A stretch of 64,000 bases of DNA. Source: Magallana gigas (lineage: Eukaryota). The stretch covers positions 15,810,001 through 15,874,000 of the forward strand of contig NC_088855.1 in assembly GCF_963853765.1 (NCBI RefSeq), written 5' to 3'. The translations under genes were made by a program, and so were the position numbers. Shown here piece by piece: positions 12,960-64,000 of this stretch; within the stretch, counting starts at the first letter, position 1, and every line of letters starts with the position of its first letter. The notes below the pieces were generated by a model. The model did not search any database. It was not told where the DNA came from and saw nothing but the letters and a program-made list of their open reading frames with translations.

Positions 12960-13390
12960 AAATCAGTCGGAAGCAAATTGAAAGTGGGGGGGGGGGGGCT
13001 AAACTAATCCTCAGATATCTTGACAAAACCTAATTCCCCAAACTCCCAAAATCATGAAAATCCTAATCCGTTGGGGGGGGGGGGGGGGGGAGGGGAGGTG
13101 ATAACCATAGTTCCAAAAAAAATCTTTCCTACCAAAATCCCCCCCCCCCCAAATCATGAAATTCCTTATCCGTGTAGGGGGGGGGGGGGGGGGGGAATAG
13201 TATACCTATAATTCCAACTTCTAAATATTTCAATCTTTTCAAGGTAAATTTCAGATCAATTATGCTTGCTGCGAGAAAAAGTGGGGGGGGGGGGGGGGGG
13301 GCTCAACCTTCTTTTATGCTATGTGCCTAATGGTTAGGTCTTACTTGGCAAAAAAGTGGGGGGGGGGGGGGGCTAAGCCCCCCTCCCTAG

Positions 13391-13452
<62 letters not shown>
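12960..13452. repeat. Poly-G/poly-C-rich repeat remnant ending in (CT)~27 (13398-13452)
   Basis: Five long G runs (~12985, 13073, 13176, 13283, 13357) with a repeated aaagtgggggg...gct motif, followed by a CT microsatellite. Confidence 0.6.
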
Positions 13453-13747: not shown

Positions 13748-16700
13748 ATGGCGGTTAAATGTTTACTGATTTTCATGGCGCTTGCTGCATATTTTCAAGG
13801 TTAGTTTTATAAAAAGTTCATCTCCAAAGTTGATAGTTCTTATTAATATTCTGTAAATAAAATTCTGTATTACATTAAAAGGATAATAACAAAATTAAAG
13901 TTACGGTAACTTTGATACTTTTGCATGCTTTTTTACATTTTCAAAAGGGTTTTTTTCCTGTTTTAATTAATACTGTCCTTATCTTAAATTTTAAGAAAAC
14001 ACTACAAGTACATGACTGAATTTTATGTACATTTTAATCAATGTTAGAGCGGGGGTAATGCTCATCTATAGATATTCCTTGACACATATGTTTTATCATT
14101 ATTGTCTATCTATAGATATTTTCATGGAGAAAAGCTAACAGAGCCCCTTAAATAAAGACTATAAAATAACTGATGAATCTTCTAACCATTTACTCTTTTT
14201 AATTTAAAAAAGTCTAAATTTGTTCCTTCCTTTTACATTCAATGCCCGAACAAGATTGAAGTCTGTAAAATAAACACAAATGTACAAACAGTATTGAAAT
14301 AATGAACAGGAAGAGGCGCCATTGAATCCATTCAATATTTTGTCTTTAAATGTCGCTTATCTCCAAAACTATCAAACCTTTAAAAATATTTTTTTTCTTT
14401 TTCAAACTTATTGGATGGTTTCAGATTTTAGCTACGATAGAAATATATTCATCATAAAGTTTGACTTGAAAAAAAAACGACATTTCAAATCCATTCAGTG
14501 CCTCCGAAAAAGGTTTGCTAAGTTTCTATTCATTATCCGCTTTTGAAAAGGGTTATGACCCTTTATTCGTTCACACAATACCGAAAATGTTTTTGTTGAG
14601 TCTAGGACAAAACGTCGAGATGATATTAGTTTACAGACGGAAGTACAAAGAAACAGGCGGATGTCGGACAAAATACTCTGAATGCTGTAGGATCAGTGCT
14701 CTTCAAATCAAATTTTAATCAATTTCTAATTGTTCTTCCATGTGAACCACTTTAAGAGTGAAATTGACTTAGCTGTCATAATTATGGTTTAACTCTACAT
14801 TATACCTATAAAAAGGAACAAAATAAAACTGTCTTATTTTCAAACTTTAAACATATAGATATGTAATCAACAAAACTGTTTAATTACAGGTATAGAGGCC
14901 CGCAGAGCAAGAGTAAGATTCCGGTGAGTTAGGTACACATTGACACATTTAAAAGAATTAAATAAATTGAAAATGCTATCTTATCATTTTAAGTGGGTAT
15001 AAATACAGGAAGAAGGAAAATATAATCAAAAGATCAAAATTTCGGACTTCTGGTCCATTAAAATCCCTAAATTATACTAATAAAGAAGTAAATAATTGTA
15101 ATGTATTGGAAAATAACGTTTAACAAAATTTCTTCTATAAAGAATTACAAAATATTTCACAATTAAAAGTTATTATAAAAAGCCAATGCCTTAAGAGCCC
15201 TCACGGCCCCTAATTTGAAAGGCCAACCCATTTTCTTGATATCAAATGAAAACTTAATTTTTGAATTTATTTCATGTAAAAGTTCATATCTTCACATACA
15301 ATTAGATAAAAGTGCATTACAGTGCATACGCATCACAAATACATATCATTTAAGACAGAGGTATAAAAGCGGTCAGATGCCGTGGATAAACTCTAGCTCT
15401 TAATTTTTTAAAGTTGTTTCTTTTTGTTTTACATGTCTTAACAACATACTTTTGAGAAAAGAGATATTTTAAAAAACTATTAAAAATCAGGACGCTTTTT
15501 TAACCTTAATTTTTAAGCTTTACAAGCTTTTGTGTTTTTAATGACAGAACAATAAAAATCTTCGGTCTACAATCCCTGAAAATTTGAACTCAATATCTTC
15601 ATTTATTTAGTAGAAAATCTAAACATCGTTTGAAATGTCAATATCTCAAAAACATAAATGACGTCATCAATGCAAAAAATCCAATATTTGTTAGTTTTAA
15701 ACGTTTCCTAAAATCTTCCGAGCCAAATAAACATCAAAATGATTATAGACATTGAATTCTAATTTTGAAATTGTTGGTTCCATAACACCATAGACTAGAC
15801 TAAGTATCATACCGCGCTAGCGTGCGGTAATCAAGTTTTGTCTCTGTGGCCTTGCGTGTTCTAAGAACGAGCATATTTAAGAATAACCATTCAATGCTTA
15901 AATAAAACAGCATTATATTAAAAGCTAGATGAATTTTGTTTCAATATTATATACATTTATGAATCATTTTCATGCGAACAAGAACCTTGAGCTGATAACA
16001 CTATCGGTTTTATTTTCTTCAGAGGAGGAAGGGGAGGAGGGGGAGGAAATGACTTTCTTGTTTACCTTGGTATCTTTGGTTCAGCGATAATTGGAGTGTG
16101 TTTCTTTGCTTGTGTCCTTTATTTCTTGCCCACAATTCGGCGGATTAAACGCTATCTGTTTCGCCTTTGTTGTTGTTGTTGCGCAAACCAACAGGCAGAA
16201 GTCGATGCAGGTATGTAAACCCATAAATATTGTATATTTCATGTATACGTTTATGATAAGCTATTATTTGTTTCATATATCAACAATGTTCTGTTGTAAT
16301 CCTAATAATTGAATTTGATTTAAAAATTAAACGATACTTACAAAGTAGAAGTTTGATTGTAATTCTCCGAAGTATGCGTCAGTATTAGAGATCAGGTGAG
16401 ATTGCAAAGCTATTCCCAGAATTCAATCTTAAAAGGTGCTGAGGCCACAAACAGAGACTCTCAATACAGGGTGGGTGCGGTGTGGCACCTGATCTCTAAT
16501 ACTGACGCATACTTCGGAGAATTACAATCAAACTTCTACTTTGTAAGTATCGTTTAATTTTTAAATTCTCCATCAGTATGCGTCAGCATCGAGATCACGT
16601 GAGAGATTTAAAGTGTGGTCACAGCACTAAATATGAGAAATGGACTTAGCAATAATGTCCTAATTTCTACTGAAAGCATTAACAAATTTTTTAATTTACC

Positions 16701-19700
16701 AAATTTATTAAAACAAACATTTTCAACCTATTGGGTTGAATTGTCACTTGTGGAATATTTGGATAAAACTGACAGTCCAAAATTATCACTATTTACAGTT
16801 CTGTGGTAAAACTTATGAAATGTTCCTGAGTTAGACCATCCTGCAGCATTCATGATACCGGTGAGCGACATTCCCACAGACTTTGCAGCACTAGTGGCAG
16901 CGGAGCGTGTGCTATGTGCACTAAAAATGTTCGTGTCTATGCCAGCGTCTGTCATCACTTTTTTGATCCAGCGAGCTACCGTTTGACTAGTTACAGCATT
17001 ATGTGGTTTTCTAATCATCAACAATAACTTAGTTGTATCTCCTCTAATATCTGCTGTTGTTTTTAAGTACAGTTTCAACAGTGAATATACACACAGAGGT
17101 GGACTATCTGAAAACTTTCTTAACACTAAAGGCGCAACTTGAAAAGATGGTCTTGTTTGCTTGAGTAACACATTAAACCTAAATACTATACAATCATCCT
17201 CTATATACATATCTCTTATATCTAAACAAGCTAAGGACTGACAACGTTGTCCTGAAACTAAAGCTAATAACATAGTCAACTTAGAGGTCATATCTGGTAA
17301 GGACAAACTCTCATTTTCTAACAAACTAAGGTATTCTAACACTATATTTACATCCCAAGTAGTACCATATCTAGGCAAACAAGGTTTAATATTGAATACA
17401 CCTCTCAAGAATCTTTTCACTAAAGGATGTTGGCCTACAGGGAGATTATCTACAATAATGAAACCTGACAGTGCTGATCTGGCTGTGTTTATAGCACTAT
17501 AACCACAACCCTCTGTCATAAGTGATGCTAAAAAATCTAACACATTAGAAATAGTAGGTACACAACTGTTACACTGAACTTGACTTGAATATTGAAACCA
17601 CTTCTTAATGTACACATTGTATTGTTTACATGTGGAGCCTCTCCATGATTTCATAAGAACTGAAATTGATCTTTCCGATAAATCAAGTTTCTTGAAATTT
17701 TCCCTGAAACATGGCACACCATCAAATGAAGTTTTCGGGCCAGAGGGTGCACTTGTGTAGGACTGTTTTTCAACTGCAGCATTGTTTTGGATGGCTTCAG
17801 AGCAAGTGGAGGTTTCACACACATTCTCAAGATGATTGGGTACCAGTTCTGTGTGTCCCATAGAGGTGTAACCAAGAGGCCTTCTGCTTTGTCCATCAGG
17901 ATTTTTTGACATACTCGGTCGATAATGCTAAACGGAGGAAAAGCATAAAAAGACAAATTAGTCCAAGAAATAGTGAATGCATCAACAAAAGATGCTCCAG
18001 GTTCATTTTTCCAACTTACAAAACATTCTAACTGTTTGTTAAGTCGAGATGCAAATAAATCAATATGTGGTTTAAAATATACACTAGTTATAGTTTTAAA
18101 AAGTTTTTCATTCAACATCCATTCTGTTTCATCTCGAATCATTCTACTCTCCCTGTCTGCCACTACATTATCAACACCTGGTAAATGTACAGCTGTTAAC
18201 CACATATTATTTCTTTGCACAAAAGTCCATATTTCTCTAGCTTTATAATTACATGCTGTTGATTTTGTACCACCCATATTGTTAATATATGCCACTGTTG
18301 TGGAATTGTCACAATAAATTTTTACATGTTTATTACACAACTCAGCATGAAAACTTTGTAGTCCAAGAAAAACTGCATGTAATTCCAAATAGTTAATGTT
18401 GGGCAAGTACTGTTTTTCTTCAATGGACCAATGTCCCCCTGTAGAGACACCATTGTATTCTGCCCCCCAACCTATTCCTGATGCATCAGTGGTTAGTGTC
18501 GCTTGGATACTTTTCTGTCGAATTGGAGCCTTGATGCCACTATTTATTTGTATTGACCACCATTTTAAGTCTTGAAGCGCCTCTGCTGACAGTGTCATTT
18601 TTGAATCAAAGTTTCCCTTGTTACATTTAAGAGCTATAGCTTTTTCTTTTTCAAGTAGTTTGGTATGTAACAATCCTAAAGGAATTGCTACTGAAGATGA
18701 AATAAGGACTCCCACTAGTTCTGCCACTTGTCTAATTGAGTGTGATTTATTTGAACAAAAATGGTGATAAAGATTTTTGAATTTCTTTATCTTTTCCGGA
18801 GTAAGACTGATTGTCATTGATTTAGAATTCAAAACAAATCCTAAAAATACAATTTCGTGTGTAGGTACCACCACTGATTTTTCTTTATTGATCTTAAATC
18901 CCAATTGTTCAAATAGATCTATTGTGTCTTGTATGTTTTTTAAACACTGTTCATAAGTTTCTCCTTGTAAATAGGAATCATCAATGTATGCAACAGACAC
19001 ATGTCCTTTAGATCTAAGTGAAGCATATACTGGTTTTAGGAGCTTAGTGAATAGTCTGGGTGCACTTGACAGACCATTTGGTAAACATGTGTACTGATAA
19101 AGAGTTCCTTTCCAAATGAATCTTAAATATTTTCTGTCAGGATAGGCTACATTCACAGTATAATATGCATCACTTAGATCCACAGAACCCATATAACATC
19201 CCGGTTGAATCAATCTTAAAGCTGTACACAGTGTTTCCATTTTAAAATGAGCATACTCAATGTTTTCATTCAGTTGTTTTAAATTCAAGATAACACGATA
19301 GCTGCCATCCTTTTTAGGACGTAAAAACACAGATGATATATATTCATCATCAGAGTGTGAAGCTTTCTCCACTACCCCTTTCGCCATTAACTTTAATAAC
19401 TCTCTGTCTAGAGCCACAGCCTCTGCAGAGTTGAGTTTAGTTTCTCTCACTGAATATTGAACAGGTACTGAAGTAAATTCTAATGAATATCCTTTAACAG
19501 CATTAAGGATGTATCTGTCATGTGTGATAGTTTTCCACACTGATAGAAATTGACTAATCCGTCCGGCATGTTGAATGTCACCTACCTTCTCTACTTTTGG
19601 TGGGACACGGGTTTCTTGTTGTAGTTCTTCTTTGTTTCGTGATTGCTGTGGTGGTAGTTCCGGTTGTAATGCCCCAGCTGGTAATGCTGGGGTCCTCTCC

Positions 19701-22700
19701 CTAAAAAATTAGGTTTGGATCTTTCTCTGAACTTCAGACGAGGATTGAACTTCATTCTAGTTTTGGAAGTTTTGTCATCATAAGCTACCTTGTTAGCCAT
19801 TTTGTTGTGTTCCGTGATGTTTTTCATTTTTTCCACCACGTCATCACCAAACAAATATGCCGTTATTTCAGTCTGACTAGTGCACAGTTTTTTGTATTCT
19901 GGTTTCATGTTATTTTTTATACATGCTTTTCTGTGCAAAGAAAGTTCAGTGTTACTAGAGGCCAACAAAGCCACACCATCGAGCAGATCTTTGGCTGCTT
20001 TGTTTTTGTCAAATTCATTGTTAGGTTTCAGCAAGCTATCCACCACCTTGATTACGGGACCAAGTCCTTTCAATAGGGTTTTCTGGATCTTATGAACCTT
20101 TACGTCCGTCGACCTCGTAGTTTCGTTCATACAATAGTTCCAAACGAAATCATTCACTCGAGGAAATTCCAACTTGCAGTTTTCTGGCCGTAAATGTTTA
20201 TCAAACAAGTCATTTTTCTTCGAATCTTCTAATTTGTTGACTAACAGCTTATTTACTAAGTCTGCTAATTTTGTTGTCACGGCATCGGAAGTTTTTTCCT
20301 CAACAATGTAGTTGGAAACAGCGAAGAAATCTTCGTCATGTTTATCCGTGCCGCCATTTTTGTTTACCTCTACGTCATGTCCGCCCAAGTCTGAAGGCCC
20401 CGCCTCCTTTTGACTGACAGCGGGTAATTTTCCATGCGCGGTCGACTCGCAGCTTATCTTGGCCTTTTTTGCCGCGTTATTAGAAACGTTGTCGGCCTTT
20501 CTTTTAGTTGTACTATGTTTTCCAACCGATTCAGAATCACTATCATCAGCCGATTCTGCTTGCACATAAATCAAATTATTTATTGCATCCAAAGATTTCT
20601 TCATGGCCATCATAGCCGAATTTTGATCTACCATGAATCTTTTGAACATCGATTCGGTAACAAATTCGGTGTTATGCACAGTATCTTGTTCGCTGCACAT
20701 TTTATCTTGTGTAGTTACGTAATCTTCTTCTTTAGATCTTGGTCTCGAAGAATCATCGTCCACCCACTTATGGGCATTTGGTGACGAATTATGTTCAAGC
20801 GCATCTCGCTTACGAGAATGCTTTGCACTTGTATGCGCATCTTGATCATGATGCGTTTCCGACTGTTCAATGACTTGGGTTAGAAAATCCCCCAAAATGG
20901 CGTCGGAGCCTGAGGGACGCTCCTCGTCCATCATGTCCATATCCATATCGTAAAAACGCACGATAAAACAGTTTACATCTAAAAACTCCTTTCAAATTTA
21001 CCGCAAATGTTCTGCACCAATTCACTATCCAACGAGAAACGCTAAATGTACTAAAAAACGGTCACAAAACAAATTTAAATTACAGAGCATAAAATTCCAC
21101 GACTGATCAAATCTGGGTCAAACTTCGCATTGAATTCTGGGAATAGCTTTGCAATCTCACGTGATCTCGATGCTGACGCATACTGATGGAGAATGTTTAT
21201 CCTTTGCTATTAAGAATTGATATTATATTTGAAAAACCAAAATATGCATACTACTAGTCATAATTAATTGCAGGAATCGCCAAAAACACAAACTCGTTAA
21301 AGAACAGACATGAATAGGATATGTAGCTACAGCAAAAAACAATTGACACGATGTAGTCATTAGACGGCAATAACCGCATGAATTGTCACTAAATGACACA
21401 CTCTCTTGTACCAGTTTTAGTAAAAAAAAAAAAAAAAGAAGAAGAAGAAGAAGAAGAAGCATGCAACTTCTGGTACTTTTTAAAAATTACAATTTTCATA
21501 AAGGATGAGATCTCATCTCATAACACACATAAACGGCCCATTATGTACAATTTGGTGTAAAACTGCATGTAAATTTTAAAATCAATAATCTAACATATCA
21601 TATCATACGAGGGTTGTTCGGAAACTATTGAGACAACTCGAATATTTTCTTTTCTAATTGACGAATTTTGGTGAAAATTGGCATAGACACTAAAGAAACG
21701 ACAACAAATAATAAAACAAAGTAATATTAAAAGAATATTTAATATTTTGTTTACGACGGTAGATAATCAAGTCGGTGGTCGGAGATTTAACAACTTAAGC
21801 ATCTACTTTATAAGTGTCCGTAGAATTACAGTTAATGATAAAAGAAATCAAATTAAACATGTTCATTTTGCTATTCTTTGCGACTAACTTTTGATTTAAG
21901 TTTCACTGATGTTCGAGTTGAAATACGGATATGGTACACATATATTTACCAAACAATAGAAATCTGACAACGACTTTACATTGAATTTTGACGTCAAGGC
22001 GGCGCATTGAAAACCGTCAAACTGGTGAAAATATCAGAAAAGGACCTTTTAGGGCCACGCAATTGCTTAAAAAACTATTCGATGACAAAAGAAGGCATAG
22101 AGCCTCAGTTCATCATATTTTTTTCACTAATTGTTAAACTAGAATTAGGCCAAAGGGATTAATTATCAAGTATTTTTGACATACTAACTGTTGTCAACAG
22201 TTCTAAAATATATAAAAAAAAAAATGACTGCATGAGACATTCACAGTAATTAGACTTTCGGGTAAAAATAACTCGATTTTTACCCACCACCCCCCCCCCC
22301 CCAAAAAAAAAAACCAAACAAACAAAACCACAAGAATTATAGAAAATATAAATGATGACATCTTGAAATGAAAACAAAAGATGAGCAATAAAGAATAATT
22401 CTTATTTCCGTTCGTTTGTAAGGTGTTTAAAACACAAGAACAATAAGAAGCGTTAAAATGACGTTGCGTAAAGTTTGCAGTTGCGCCGGGTCACTGGACG
22501 AAGGCATGTTGGTTAGCTTACCAGGAATGATCTATTCATGCCATGGACAAGAAACTTTTCACATTGATAATCTCTATCCTGATTTCCGTTTTGGTGAAAT
22601 TTCAAGAGTTTATCTTTTTAACTAAAAGAATAAGAGAAAATGTCTCAATGATTTCCGAACAACCCTCGTAGATACATGTAGTATGGTCTATATAATTATA

Positions 22701-23797
22701 ACAAACAAAATTAAATTATACCCACCCCCGACGGTTTCGGCGCTAGATTTCCTTTTGTGTGTCAACATTTACGTGAGCCAGATTTAGTGGCATGGGGTTT
22801 CCTGGGTAAATAATTGCAAGTAGAGAGTTCGAATCCTGTTGGGCCTGTTAAAATGTCAAGAACTTATCTTTTTGGACCAAATATTGTAAAATTTGAAAAT
22901 TCTAACATGGTGAAAGTGTTTTGATTATAAAGTACTTTTATTCACATTACAATCGACATGTGTCCCACATCAACTTTAATAATTAAATCTCCTACAGTGA
23001 AAAGCACTGCGCAGTGTGTCAATTATTTTGCCCTGGTTACAATCATCTTCATTGCAACTAAATTAGAAAATTTTGTTTATATCAAAATATTCTGATGTAA
23101 TCTTCAGGTAGTAGCGGCACATGCGCAGATTAAGAGCGTTTCTGTTTTTGCTATGGTGAGTGGCAAAGTGCAGTAATAATTGTAGTTGCATGGATGGGGT
23201 GATGGGGTTGGAGTCCAAGGTTTATTTTTTTAAAATTTACTATATAAATGAATTGGACTCCCCATTCCTACCCTTTTTTTAAATGCGGCACACGATGACA
23301 TTGGCACACAAAAGCAAATCTAGCATCGGCAACTGAATTGAAATGTTAAGATAATCGATAAATTGAAATTTCACATGCAAACATTTTAACCCCAAATTGT
23401 GCATAAAGGGCTGCTCATGTGTATTATGGTACGCGATCTCATCCTTAAATTTGAAGTTTATAAAAATTATAATTTTTAAAAAGTACCAGAAGTTGCACGT
23501 TGCCTTCTTTTTGACAAAAACTGATACAATCGATTGTTATTAAGGGGTAAACACTTAGTCCGAGTATTGCTGTCTAATGACATCTAGTCTTAAATTGATT
23601 ACTGTGTTTAGGGAACGATATAGAATGTCAACAAGAACATAGGCAAAAATTACATGCATCTTAAATAGACTTTTTTTTACTTTCTTAAGGATTGAAAAAC
23701 CCCAGCAATAAACAAAGCTCTGATGAACAGTTGGACCAACACATGTTGGAATTAATTTTATTAGCAGGTATTTATTTATCTTTTGTAAAGATGTAAC

Positions 23798-59500: not shown

Positions 59501-62500
59501 AATACATCATTAAATATCTAAATATTTCAAGAAACAGTAAAAATACAAGAAAGAATTGCCTGTATTTGACTATTCTTTTAAAGCTCAACTTTACATTAGA
59601 TTTGTAAATAATTGCAAAGTGATAAAACATACCTTTTGCCTTGCTTCCTCTTCTTCATAAAGCTTCTTTTGCCAGCTCTGAATCTCATTTTTGAGAGAGA
59701 GTTCAGCATTTTCTTTCTGATTTCTTGTCTCAAGCACCTGCAACTCTGCTTGTTTCATCTTGTATTCATGATTTTCTTGAAACTTTTCAAACTGTTGTGA
59801 TAAAAAAAAAATCTTTGTAAATTTGAAACCAAATATCACTTTCAGCCAATTTTTCATTAACAAAATAGTGTGGCAACAAAGTCTAAACCAAAATAGAGCT
59901 TACTTTTTCAGAGTATCCTTCAATTTCTTCCTGCAAGCTGTCTCTTTCTGCTTCCACAGCATCAAGCTAGAATAGCGAAAGTTTTAGCTTATCAAATTTA
60001 AAAACTCAGCATTAAAAAATCTAATACTCAATATATTGCAGTATGTTAAAGCTCTGAATGAGTGACATGGGCCACCTTACCTGCTGTTTGTAACTGGTGA
60101 CCTCAGCCAGGGCCGCCTCTCTCTGCTCTTTGTACACCTCTATCTCTTTCTGCAAGTCTCCTTTATTGTGTGTCTGGTTCTCAACATCTTCTGAGAGACA
60201 CTGTACCTTGCTCTGTAGAGACTGAATGTCCTGCTGGAGCTCAGAGATCTTTCTTGCGGAGCTTTCCACTTCACCTTCCTTTTCTTTCAGACTTCTGTTT
60301 AGCTGAGCCACAGCAGTGTTTCTCTCCTTGATGGCACTGTCTTTCTCTACAATCTTTGCTTTGAGTTCACCAGTGATGATCTTAAGCTCCTTGTGGCTGT
60401 TCAGCTCCTCAGTGAGCAAATCTTCCAATTTTTTGTTTTTCTCTCGAACTTCTTCTATTTCTCTCTGTCTCTGGGCAACCCTGCCTTCCAGGTGAGATAC
60501 TCGGTCTTGGAACATGAGTCTCTGATTGCTCAACATGCCCTCCTTCTCTGCCACTATGGATTCATACCGACTGGTCATTTGGTTAAGTTTATCTTGCATC
60601 TCAGTGCTGTAGTTCTCTTTCACTTCCTCTGAGGCCCTTGAATACTCGTTTTCCAACTGCTCAAGCTGTGCCCGCCAGTAAGATTCACTTTCCTCAAGCT
60701 TGCGGTGAGTTTGAGTTTCAAGTTCTTGATAACGTCTGGTTCTAAACTCAACATCCTCCTGCAGTTCCTGCACCGTCTTATCAAACATGGCCTTCATTTC
60801 TTTTTTAGCCTCCCTCTCCACTTTACACTGCATCTCAAGCTCATCAATCGTCCTTTCATTTGTCTGTTGCCTGTCCCTAGCTTCTTTCAGCTCACGGTTA
60901 ATAGCAGTAAAGTCAACTACTAAGCTCTTTAATTTCTCTTCACTGTTCTGCTTCAGTTGTGAGAGCTCTTCTTTCAGGGAGGAAACTTTCTCCTCATGCT
61001 CTTCACACAGTGACTCAATCTGTTCCTTATAACCTTGAGTTGTCTTGTTCTTCTCTTCAACTGTTTTTTCATAATCTGATTTCAGCTGCACTACTTCATC
61101 CCTCTTACATTCTAGTTCCTTGTTAGCTTCAATAAGATTTTCTGATGCCTTCCTGAGTTGACCAGCACTTTCCTCGTTTTGTGATGTCAACTGGTTCACT
61201 GAACATTCTAAAGTTTCAATCATTTCACATAAACTCTGCTTTTCACTCAATATGTTTTCACATTCATCAACTTTCATTTTCAGTGTATTTTCATTTTCAG
61301 TGTTCCTAGCTTTCAAACTTTCCAATTCACACAACTTATCTGAGTATTCTTTCTTCAGATGTTCCAAAGAATGCGTAAGTTTTTCAGAATCAACATTCAA
61401 GTCCATTATCATTTTATCAAGATCACTTTTTTCTGCCAGCAGTCTTTCAGAAATCAGTTTTTCACCTGACAGATCACTTTCCAGCACTAAATTCCTCTCC
61501 TCTAGCCGTTTCGCACACTGCTCTTTGTCTTCCAGTTCACTCTTCAGTGCTTGTATCTCTGAACTGAGTTCCGCCTGCAGACTGTTCACTTGCTCCGAGA
61601 GGACCTCCACCTTTCTCAGGCTCTCATCTCTTTCACTGGTCACTGATAGCACACTCTTTTTCTCCACTTCAAGCTCGTTGTGAAGATTCATTATCTGACT
61701 TTCCAAATCTTGGTTCCTTCCTAACAGGGACTCTGTCTGCTGTTTTTGATCATCCAGACGACATGACAGATCCTGAATCTCTGCTTCCAGCCTGCTGGTC
61801 TTCTCTTTCAGTCTTTCACATTCCGAACCAGATTGTTGGATCTCTGTCTGATTGGCCATTGCTTGGTTAGTGAGAGATTCAACTTCATCCTGCAAAGAAG
61901 CAATTCTTTCCTTCAAGCTCTGGATTTCTTCTTCACGATTCGTCATCACTCTGACCTGCTTGGCATTGTTAGAGGTCAGCTGATCAACTTGCCCTTGGAG
62001 TTCATCTCTCTGTCCACGAACATCTCCCAAAGTGTTTCTCAAACTTGTAACTAAGCCATTCAGCTTGTTCTTCTCAACTTCAAGAGAGTCCACTTCTCGG
62101 TGCAGTTGTCCAACACTTGCCTCTGAATCTTGTAGACGCTTTTCCAACTGATCCCTCTGGGCTTTCACTCTGTTCTGGCTTTTGTTAAGCTCTGACTCTT
62201 TCTCCTTCATTTCTTTCACTGTTTTCTCGAGCTGTTGGATCTGCTGTTGGAGTTGTTCGTTGTCTGCTTGTTTGACCTCTATGACCTTCTTAACTAGCGC
62301 CATCTGGCCACTGTTTTCCTCCAATAGATCTTGCTTGCTCTGTACTTCCTCACGTGCGGCTTGAAGCTCTGCTTCTCTATGCTGTAACTGCTGACGTAAC
62401 CTTGACACTTCTCCATTGATTTTCTGATTCTGCTCAGTTGCCTCCTCATGTTGTTTTAATTGTTCTTGATGGAAATTAACCTCTTGCTGCAGACGACTTT

Positions 62501-64000
62501 CAAGATCATTGCTTGTCTGTTCCAACCTATTCAGTTCCTTTTTCAAAGACTGTTCTTTTTCCATTGACACCAACTGAAGTTCTTCAAGTTCACCTTGTAA
62601 TTTTTGATTCTGTGAACTAATCCTTGAAATTTCATTTTTCAATTTGTCTACGGTGTTTTGCATATCCTGTTCTAAGTTCCCGTAACTAGTCTTTACCTCC
62701 AAAAGCTCATTCTTACAATGTTCATTTTCTGTCTTCACATTGGTCAGGGATTTCTGCAGAGTCTCTATCTCACACTTTTGTCTATCCACCTCCATTGACT
62801 TGTTCTCGGAGGCACACTTTTCAGCACTGCAGTCACTCTCAAGATCACTAACCCTGTTACTGAGTTGCACATTCTTCTCCTTTTCCCTCAGTAATTCTGT
62901 GTTAATGGTCTCCAGTTCCTGACCCTGTTCTTCTAGCTTCATCTTGAGCTCACTCATCTGCTCAGCTGACATCTGGTTATCATGAGCACTCCACTGATAC
63001 TTGTCCTGCCAAGATGACAGCTGACTCTGCAGTTGTTCCACCTGAGACTTGGACTTGCTGTTTATGCTATCAATTTTCTCTTCAAAGTTTACACAATCTG
63101 TCTTCAATCTCTCATTTTCACTCTTAAGCTGATCCAGTTCATGCACAAGGTTGTTTATTTCCTCTGTTTGTTGGTCTACTTGCATTTTACTCTCAGATCT
63201 GATGGATTGTAACTGCTGTTTCAGTTCCTCAATGTTTTGATCTCTCTGGGCGAGTTCTTTCTGTGCAGATTCCTCCTGTTGTTTAGCCTCAGTGGAAACT
63301 GTCATAATCTGAGCATTCAGCTTTTCCTCAGTCTGTGTAATTTCCTCTTTCAGTTGCATCATCTCTTCTTTCAAAGCTTTGATAACGTTGTCCTTTGTCC
63401 ATCGCTCATTCTCTAACACAATTTCGGTCTGCTTTAAGGAGTTTTGGGAGGCGACAATCTTGGTTTTCAGACTCTCTTCAATGTTGTAAGCCTGTTCGGT
63501 TTGGGAATTGAGCTGAGATTGTAGATCCTCTATCTGATTCATCAGTGAAGCCTTTTCTTTACTTAAAGTCTGTTCCAGAGCTGTTCTTTCTGAGAGGACC
63601 GTGTCATAGGAGGCAGTCATTGTCTGTCTTCTGCTCTCATACATTTGCTTTTCACGATCAAACTCCTACAAGAAAAATTAACCTGCCATTTATTATGAGT
63701 GTAATTCTGTATATTATGATGGTAACACAAAACTATTAAAACCACAAGATCAACCAAACCATTGATGGTTCTTTTTTACACAGCATCAAACAGAAAAGAA
63801 AAGAAGGAACTACCTATCTTAGCAGACTGTATTCGGCTTGACTTCCAACAGACAAACAGTAACCCATACCTTTGAATTTCATAGAATTCTGATGTTTCTA
63901 AAAGAATAGTTCCCTTTGAATTTCATAGAATTCTGATGTTTCTAAAAGAATAGTTCAAATAAGAAAGGAGTTAATTACCTCTCTGAGCAGACTGTACTCC
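56560..64000 (-). CDS. NUMA1: NuMA (nuclear mitotic apparatus protein 1)-like gene, 3' part; 5' end lies outside the window
   Basis: Phase-compatible GT-AG exons: >64000-63979, 63665-60081 (3.6-kb coiled-coil exon), 59966-59904, 59791-59633, 59496-59302, 59141-59018, 58914-58774, 58608-58455, 58346-58219, 57861-57599, 57313-57134, 57030-56560. Motifs LKVQLDHASRQLRD and CEDEPEEFEWNRLTELQRRNTLCLPHLKTSYPVE match the NuMA/Mud C-terminal signature (human DEPEQLDDWNRIAELQQRNRVCPPHLKTCYPLE, from recollection). Confidence 0.88.
63869..63956. repeat. 44-bp exact tandem duplication in a NuMA intron
   Basis: cctttgaatttcatagaattctgatgtttctaaaagaatagttc occurs twice. Confidence 0.95.

Follow-up and report, generated by a model that had tools for sequence, protein, structure and literature searches.

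A probable -1 ribosomal frameshift signal at the gag-pol junction of a DIRS1-like retrotransposon from Magallana gigas

A stretch of 64,000 nucleotides from Magallana gigas (NC_088855.1, positions 15,810,001 to 15,874,000), hereafter called the window and numbered from its first letter, contains an intact DIRS1-like retrotransposon on the minus strand whose gag-like and pol genes lie in different, overlapping reading frames. Within the overlap, a slippery heptamer is followed by a predicted hairpin, and very probably this site is a canonical -1 programmed ribosomal frameshift signal, stimulated by the hairpin and giving rise to a minor Gag-Pol product. According to the mechanism proposed here, ribosomes translating gag on the full-length RNA of the element would reach the heptamer at 19708-19702 with the hairpin at 19692-19672 positioned at the mRNA entry channel. 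During a minority of these encounters, the tRNAs in the P and A sites would re-pair one base back and the pol frame would then be read to 17651, yielding a Gag-Pol protein of about 1,100 amino acids with reverse transcriptase, RNase H and a methyltransferase-like domain. The majority of ribosomes would end Gag at 19591, such that Gag would be made in excess over Gag-Pol, as is the case in retroviruses and many retrotransposons with long terminal repeats (LTRs). That slippage occurs, and likewise its efficiency and its role in stoichiometry, is what we infer from the nucleotide sequences described in the following.

The frame of the gag-like gene, open reading frame (ORF) 1, is open upstream to 20961. 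Its first ATG is located at 20946 and its stop codon at 19593-19591, and between these two ORF1 (20946-19591, minus strand) comprises 451 codons, read in what we define as frame 0. The pol gene is read in the -1 frame relative to gag. In this frame, a stop codon at 19711-19709 is immediately followed by an open stretch that runs from 19708 to 17651 on the minus strand and comprises 685 codons plus the stop, so that the two genes overlap by 39 codons (19591-19708). The slippery heptamer, six T followed by A (T6A) and of a type that is listed in textbooks among the most slippery, occupies positions 19702-19708 in the X XXY YYZ phase of gag and is the proposed site of tandem -1 slippage. It is separated by a spacer of 9 nt (19693-19701) from a predicted stimulatory stem-loop (19672-19692) with a perfect, GC-rich stem of 7 bp and a loop of 7 nt. 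The arms of the stem, 19692-19686 and 19678-19672, are fully complementary. This arrangement had been claimed in a preliminary description of the window, made from the DNA letters and their translations, and is borne out in all its parts: the phase of the heptamer on the minus strand, the spacer and hairpin, the stop directly in front of the heptamer and the frame remaining open as far as 17651. The same description stated that pol has no ATG ahead of its conserved start. In full agreement with this, the first methionine of the pol frame is residue 108, while similarity to related proteins already starts at residues 45-48. By codon count, the fusion protein would be about 1,098 amino acids long.

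When a segment of 53 nt at the site was folded, the minimum free energy (MFE) was predicted to be -15.8 kcal/mol, the hairpin centroid had -14.1 kcal/mol, and the z-score was -2.27. Three out of 200 dinucleotide shuffles folded as well as the natural segment. What characterizes a frameshift signal is thus found at this junction: a heptamer in phase, a predicted structure some 5-9 nt 3' of it and an open -1 frame that lacks a start of its own. Both the anatomy of the site and the fold prediction are direct observations. The preliminary description had called the signal HIV-1-like. This holds as a functional analogy and does not hold as homology, because a cmscan search of positions 19560-19800 against Rfam at E <= 10 returned eight weak matches and no frameshift element. 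Among the models in Rfam is that of the HIV-1 frameshift element. For the loop of the window hairpin, no pairing partner that would create a pseudoknot is evident. Weak matches to C/D-box snoRNA models were noted at 19732-19785 (minus strand), within gag and upstream of the slip site; they score 13-17 bits compared with gathering thresholds of 35-90 and are most likely due to chance.

The window gag protein did not match any Pfam or PDB sequence. Its residues from about 200 to 430 are homologous to the ORF upstream of pol in 35 of the 39 related families introduced below, and ORF1 is therefore a conserved protein. Its designation as gag is based on its position and on the homology among DIRS relatives.

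A word search with the window pol protein yielded 1,074 relatives. Look-ups of exact proteins supplied the DNA of loci L001, L002, L083 and L094-L096, L083 (P0135) being a cluster member that was used in place of the 72% relative P0002, and a pattern scan of metagenome contigs provided 80 loci at 40-50% pol identity. For each locus, the pol frame was followed upstream to its first stop, and then the frame of the long upstream ORF was scored, with 200 codons or more as the threshold for a gag ORF. Of the 83 loci, 49 have pol shifted to the -1 frame relative to a frame-0 gag, and the two genes overlap there by some 60-300 nt. Eight loci have gag and pol fused in a single frame (L046, L051, L052, L058, L070, L075, L080 and L081), and one (L012) has both genes in the same frame with a stop between them. 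About 25 of the 83 were excluded on account of contig ends or interrupted frames. A convincing +1 arrangement of gag and pol was not encountered among the 83 loci. As fused and stop-separated loci exist beside those with the -1 relation, the reading frames indicate that the clade uses more than one layout for the expression of gag and pol. Clustering of the junctions at 80% identity resulted in 35 families. Together with four nearer relatives (55-72% pol identity), this makes 39 families with the -1 layout that span 40-72% pol identity to the window element.

An in-phase canonical heptamer is present in the overlap of 46 of the 49 loci. At the level of families, the number is 37 out of 39, and in 33 of the 39 the heptamer is either of the window's type or A6C. 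Among the 35 clustered families, 33 have a canonical in-phase heptamer, which is T6A in 20 and A6C in nine cases, and all four nearer relatives carry the window's type, in phase and in the overlap. Some families have non-homopolymer X XXY YYZ heptamers instead. The preliminary description had proposed a comparison of DIRS families for a slippery heptamer conserved at the start of the pol frame, and such conservation is indeed observed. It is specific for both phase and location. In the overlaps, the two favoured types are found 29 times in the slippage phase as compared with two and zero times in the other phases. They occupy 29 of 1,791 in-phase positions in the overlap and five of 12,872 in-phase gag positions upstream of it, a difference of about 40-fold. 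Since T6A and A6C specify dipeptides that differ in both frames, it is slipperiness that has been conserved and not a peptide motif. The surroundings have diverged, with the commonest base accounting for a share of 0.41 upstream and 0.43 further downstream of the heptamer. The share reaches 0.77 for the two bases directly 3' of the heptamer, and these are GG in 16 of the 23 families with the window's type. The distance between the heptamer and the preceding stop of the pol frame varies from 0 to 144 nt among the relatives, and the immediate adjacency of stop and heptamer in the window is therefore incidental. Just as in the window, pol has no ATG before the conserved N-terminal block in 19 of 33 families.

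A comparable picture emerges for predicted structure, which was assessed throughout by computed folds. The stem sequences are unrelated from family to family and the stems of different families cannot be aligned, and energy statistics were thus used in place of pair counts, with gag and pol windows of the same elements as controls. For the 60 nt after the heptamer, the mean MFE amounts to -15.8 kcal/mol as opposed to -8.9 kcal/mol for the control windows (Mann-Whitney p = 2e-10). After correction for composition, the z-scores are -1.31 and -0.13, respectively (p = 6e-6). When averaged over 33 families, a sliding fold of 40 nt stays level at about -5 to -6 kcal/mol and dips only in the windows that start 0 and 6 nt after the heptamer (-11.9 and -11.3 kcal/mol). 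The longest uninterrupted helix, 5-9 bp in length and with an arm GC content of 0.72, begins 4-11 nt downstream of the heptamer in 22 of 36 families. The conservation of the hairpin in related DIRS elements, which the preliminary description had likewise proposed for examination, thus takes the form of a predicted structure peak just 3' of the heptamer that is built from differing sequences. In L083, with about 70% DNA identity to the window element, a stem core of 6 bp has been kept, and three of nine spacer bases and three of seven loop bases have been exchanged. The conserved phase, type of heptamer and position of structure are apparent directly from the comparison. The Gag-Pol fusion by -1 frameshifting that had been suggested from the window is supported by these findings, namely by the in-phase, overlap-specific presence of one of the two favoured heptamers in 33 of 39 families, by the position-specific predicted structure and, as outlined below, by the disappearance of the heptamer where no shift is needed.

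The elements provide two internal controls for this interpretation. In 30 of 31 families, the recombinase ORF is shifted to the -1 frame relative to pol, and the two genes share 190-440 nt. No in-phase heptamer of the window's type exists in the pol/recombinase overlap of any of the 31 families, and A6C occurs there once. Eleven families have some canonical heptamer in this overlap, with types and positions scattered. A second frameshift site at the pol/recombinase overlap was therefore considered and rejected, as a conserved slippery heptamer is not present. The recombinase is evidently expressed from this second -1 overlap by a route other than a slippery heptamer, as judged from the sequences of the overlaps. 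As a side observation, the window and L002 have an ATG that shares bases with the pol stop codon, a feature that is not conserved in other families. The second control is provided by the eight fused gag-pol loci, which together have a single favoured heptamer within the 150 codons that precede the pol block. These DIRS1-like relatives share their gene order with the window element, their pol is homologous (40-48% identity), and they likewise would produce a Gag-Pol polyprotein. Unlike the window element, they have no frame change and are nearly devoid of the favoured heptamers upstream of pol, and they cannot set a ratio of Gag to Gag-Pol by recoding. From the results for the gag/pol overlap, the recombinase overlap and the fused loci taken together, it follows that the signal accompanies the need for a -1 shift and is lacking where no such shift is required.

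Several points weigh against the site being a frameshift signal. The heptamer alone is common in the AT-rich window, where it occurs 106 times on both strands. A canonical heptamer is missing in two of the 35 clustered families with the -1 arrangement, and in about a third of the families the longest predicted helix lies outside the range of 4-11 nt downstream. The families share descent and their counts are not fully independent, though the flanks of the heptamer have diverged. L083, the sole relative that can be aligned in this region, has lost the outermost pair of the stem. Covariation in the stem, another check that the preliminary description had named, did not show up: no compensatory pair change was seen, neither in L083, in which the core is unchanged, nor in the copies within the family, which are identical or nearly so. 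In principle, heptamer and hairpin might then be fortuitous, and pol might arise by another route, namely through splicing, a subgenomic RNA, initiation at an internal site or a non-AUG codon, or reinitiation once gag has been translated. The 106 heptamers in the window speak in favour of a fortuitous site. An alternative route to pol would be in line with the presence of some pol-frame ATG ahead of the conserved block in 14 of 33 families and also with the recombinase, the evident expression of which from a -1 overlap without a slippery site implies that these elements have one or more further means of expressing overlapping ORFs. On the other hand, perfect hairpins of 7 bp or more follow the heptamer at three of its 106 occurrences in the window, and the site at the gag-pol junction ranks second of the 106 by downstream folding energy (-16.1 versus a median of -3.8). 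In the relatives, about 0.4% of the codon positions in the non-overlapping part of gag carry an in-phase canonical heptamer, and 0.04% carry one of the two favoured types. These background rates render a chance heptamer within an overlap of 39 codons unlikely. The decisive evidence for the site is comparative. If the site were fortuitous, the phase- and overlap-specific enrichment of the heptamer, the structure peak directly after it and its absence in relatives with fused gag and pol would all go unexplained, and an alternative start of pol is difficult to reconcile with the first ATG of the window pol lying 60 residues inside the conserved region. We therefore regard a fortuitous site combined with another route to pol as improbable and prefer programmed -1 frameshifting.

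The gag and pol frames could also be joined at the level of RNA, if a polymerase stuttered on the run of six T or six A and thereby generated a fraction of transcripts longer or shorter by one base. Such a run is indeed part of both favoured heptamers. Stuttering does not depend on phase, yet the runs fall into the slippage phase 29 times and into the other phases two and zero times, and several families have X XXY YYZ heptamers that are not homopolymeric. In addition, a hairpin 4-11 nt downstream is a hallmark of the ribosomal mechanism, and a run of six bases is short for a eukaryotic polymerase to slip on efficiently. Transcript stuttering is thus a very improbable explanation. Finally, the difference in frame between gag and pol could be meaningless if the copy were dead and had acquired a frameshift by mutation. 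Degradation is frequent among transposon copies in genomes, and about 25 of the 83 loci studied here are truncated or interrupted. In the window copy, none of the ORFs is interrupted, and the termini match the internal complementary region with 100% complementarity; moreover, the identical junction exists in 11 independent contigs and the same frame relation in 39 diverged families. The probability that we are dealing with a mutational frameshift is close to nil.

The complete element extends over 4,877 bp (16318-21194, minus strand), as delimited by repeat architecture and domains, and is the only copy in the window. Its three ORFs are all open, and the only changes of frame are the two natural ones from gene to gene. 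The 5' (left) terminus, an inverted terminal repeat, is located at 21129-21194 (minus strand), with ATT as the first bases of the element, and the outermost 40 nt of this repeat (21155-21194) can pair with the internal complementary region. The latter is found at 16486-16604 (minus strand). Positions 16565-16604 pair with the 5' end of the element and positions 16486-16566 with its 3' end, with 100% complementarity in both cases. In the 3' (right) terminus (16318-16427, minus strand), the inner part at 16362-16427 represents the inverted repeat of the 5' terminus, and the outer part has its counterpart in the internal complementary region alone. The element accordingly has the inverted termini and the internal complementary region matching both ends that define DIRS elements. 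A target-site duplication was looked for in the flanks of the element and was not found, the bases on the two sides being unrelated. The tyrosine recombinase ORF (16728-17912, minus strand; 394 codons), read in the -1 frame relative to pol, overlaps pol by 262 nt (17651-17912). It matches Phage_integrase at about 16800-17318 (Pfam, E = 3.9e-10), and a tyrosine recombinase thus replaces the DDE integrase, as is typical of the DIRS order. In pol, RVT_1 is matched at about 18833-19318 (Pfam, E = 3.9e-21). The assignment to DIRS made in the preliminary description is therefore right on account of RVT_1, Phage_integrase, the inverted termini and the internal complementary region. The same description had placed reverse transcriptase, RNase H and a methyltransferase in pol. 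Reverse transcriptase is confirmed by RVT_1; the methyltransferase region of the window pol gives a weak match to PCIF1_WW (Pfam, residues 524-603, about 17900-18139), and for the two remaining domains the matches come from aligned relatives with 45-72% identity, of which 21 of 32 match RT_RNaseH and 13 of 32 match Dam (Pfam). By homology, RNase H and methyltransferase-like domains are probably present in the window pol as well.

In 11 contigs from other sequencing runs, copies of the element are 99.6-99.95% identical and have the identical junction, and 258 blocks of the sequence collection have an entry for the window pol protein. The near-identical copies with the same junction in 11 contigs indicate that the family is young and intact and that the arrangement of frames is not a private mutation. 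Close to the element, inverted arms of about 40-65 nt with 80-95% complementarity were noticed at 21462-21565 and 23382-23497. They are about 1.8-2 kb apart, adjoin the 5' end of the DIRS element and enclose no long ORF; perhaps they delimit a small DNA transposon.

Further features are present elsewhere in the window. A Helitron/Helentron-like transposon is located at 4969-11048 (minus strand). Its coding region is split over three adjacent ORFs with two frame changes: An ORF of 1,374 amino acids with matches to an OTU-like protease (Herpes_teg_N), DUF6570, Helitron_like_N and Rep is followed by ORFs with a PIF1 helicase and an Exo_endo_phos endonuclease. An uninterrupted ORF of 1,207 amino acids at 60021-63644 (minus strand) shows weak Pfam matches of the coiled-coil type (Fez1, GAS and crescentin rod), all of which are below the cut-offs; it may be a host gene or encode a protein of another mobile element. 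The tandem array at 47665-49335 consists of ten copies of a 166-bp unit with 90% identity and a G-rich core and looks like a satellite. Direct repeats with a period of about 101 nt, each ending in a run of 15-20 G, reside at 13045-13372, and a CT dinucleotide repeat is present at 13398-13452.

The element closely resembles the DIRS1-like elements described by Piednoel et al. 2011 (PMC3266345). Shared features are the gag-like ORF, the pol ORF with reverse transcriptase and probably RNase H and methyltransferase, the tyrosine recombinase ORF, the inverted termini, the internal complementary region matching both ends and the ATT start. With 4.9 kb, the window element falls inside the published size range of 4.0-6.3 kb, and an overlap of pol and recombinase is also common to both. 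In the cited study, ORF overlap is discussed for pol and recombinase only, the term frameshift denotes damage only, and no slippery or recoding signal is named. It describes molluscan elements as having no long ORF overlap, from which the window element differs by its 262-nt pol/recombinase overlap. Overviews of DIRS elements apply the term frameshift only to damage or to the recombinase ORF. Full-text literature searches did not retrieve a description of a programmed frameshift or a slippery site for DIRS elements, and an earlier mention in passing is possible. We tentatively suggest, with somewhat less than even confidence, that -1 frameshifting at T6A or A6C followed by a hairpin is the prevailing and selectively maintained route to Gag-Pol in a large clade of animal DIRS1-like elements and has perhaps never been described. 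If this is true, tyrosine-recombinase retrotransposons would thereby obtain their first documented recoding signal, and translational control of Gag relative to Gag-Pol would have survived the exchange of protease and integrase for a recombinase. The finding is also of practical relevance. In the gene calls encountered here, pol is truncated at an arbitrary GTG, and gag is annotated as a gene distinct from pol. Once the signal is known, intact copies can be told from degraded ones and Gag-Pol can be annotated as a recoded product. Furthermore, the 39 natural variants of heptamer, spacer and stem offer comparative material for recoding studies.

On a broader scale, the logic by which retroviruses set the ratio of Gag to Gag-Pol through -1 slippage would be extended to the DIRS order. 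With the gag-pol signals of retroviruses and LTR elements, the site described here shares a heptamer phased to the 0 frame, a GC-rich stem-loop a few bases downstream, predicted in our case, and a position near the end of gag. The strategy is also the same in that pol is without a start of its own and a minor Gag-Pol product is expected beside a major Gag. The carrier of the signal is a different one: Unlike retroviruses and LTR elements, the host element encodes a tyrosine recombinase and is bounded by inverted termini and not by LTRs, and as a DIRS1-like element it possesses neither a protease nor a DDE integrase.

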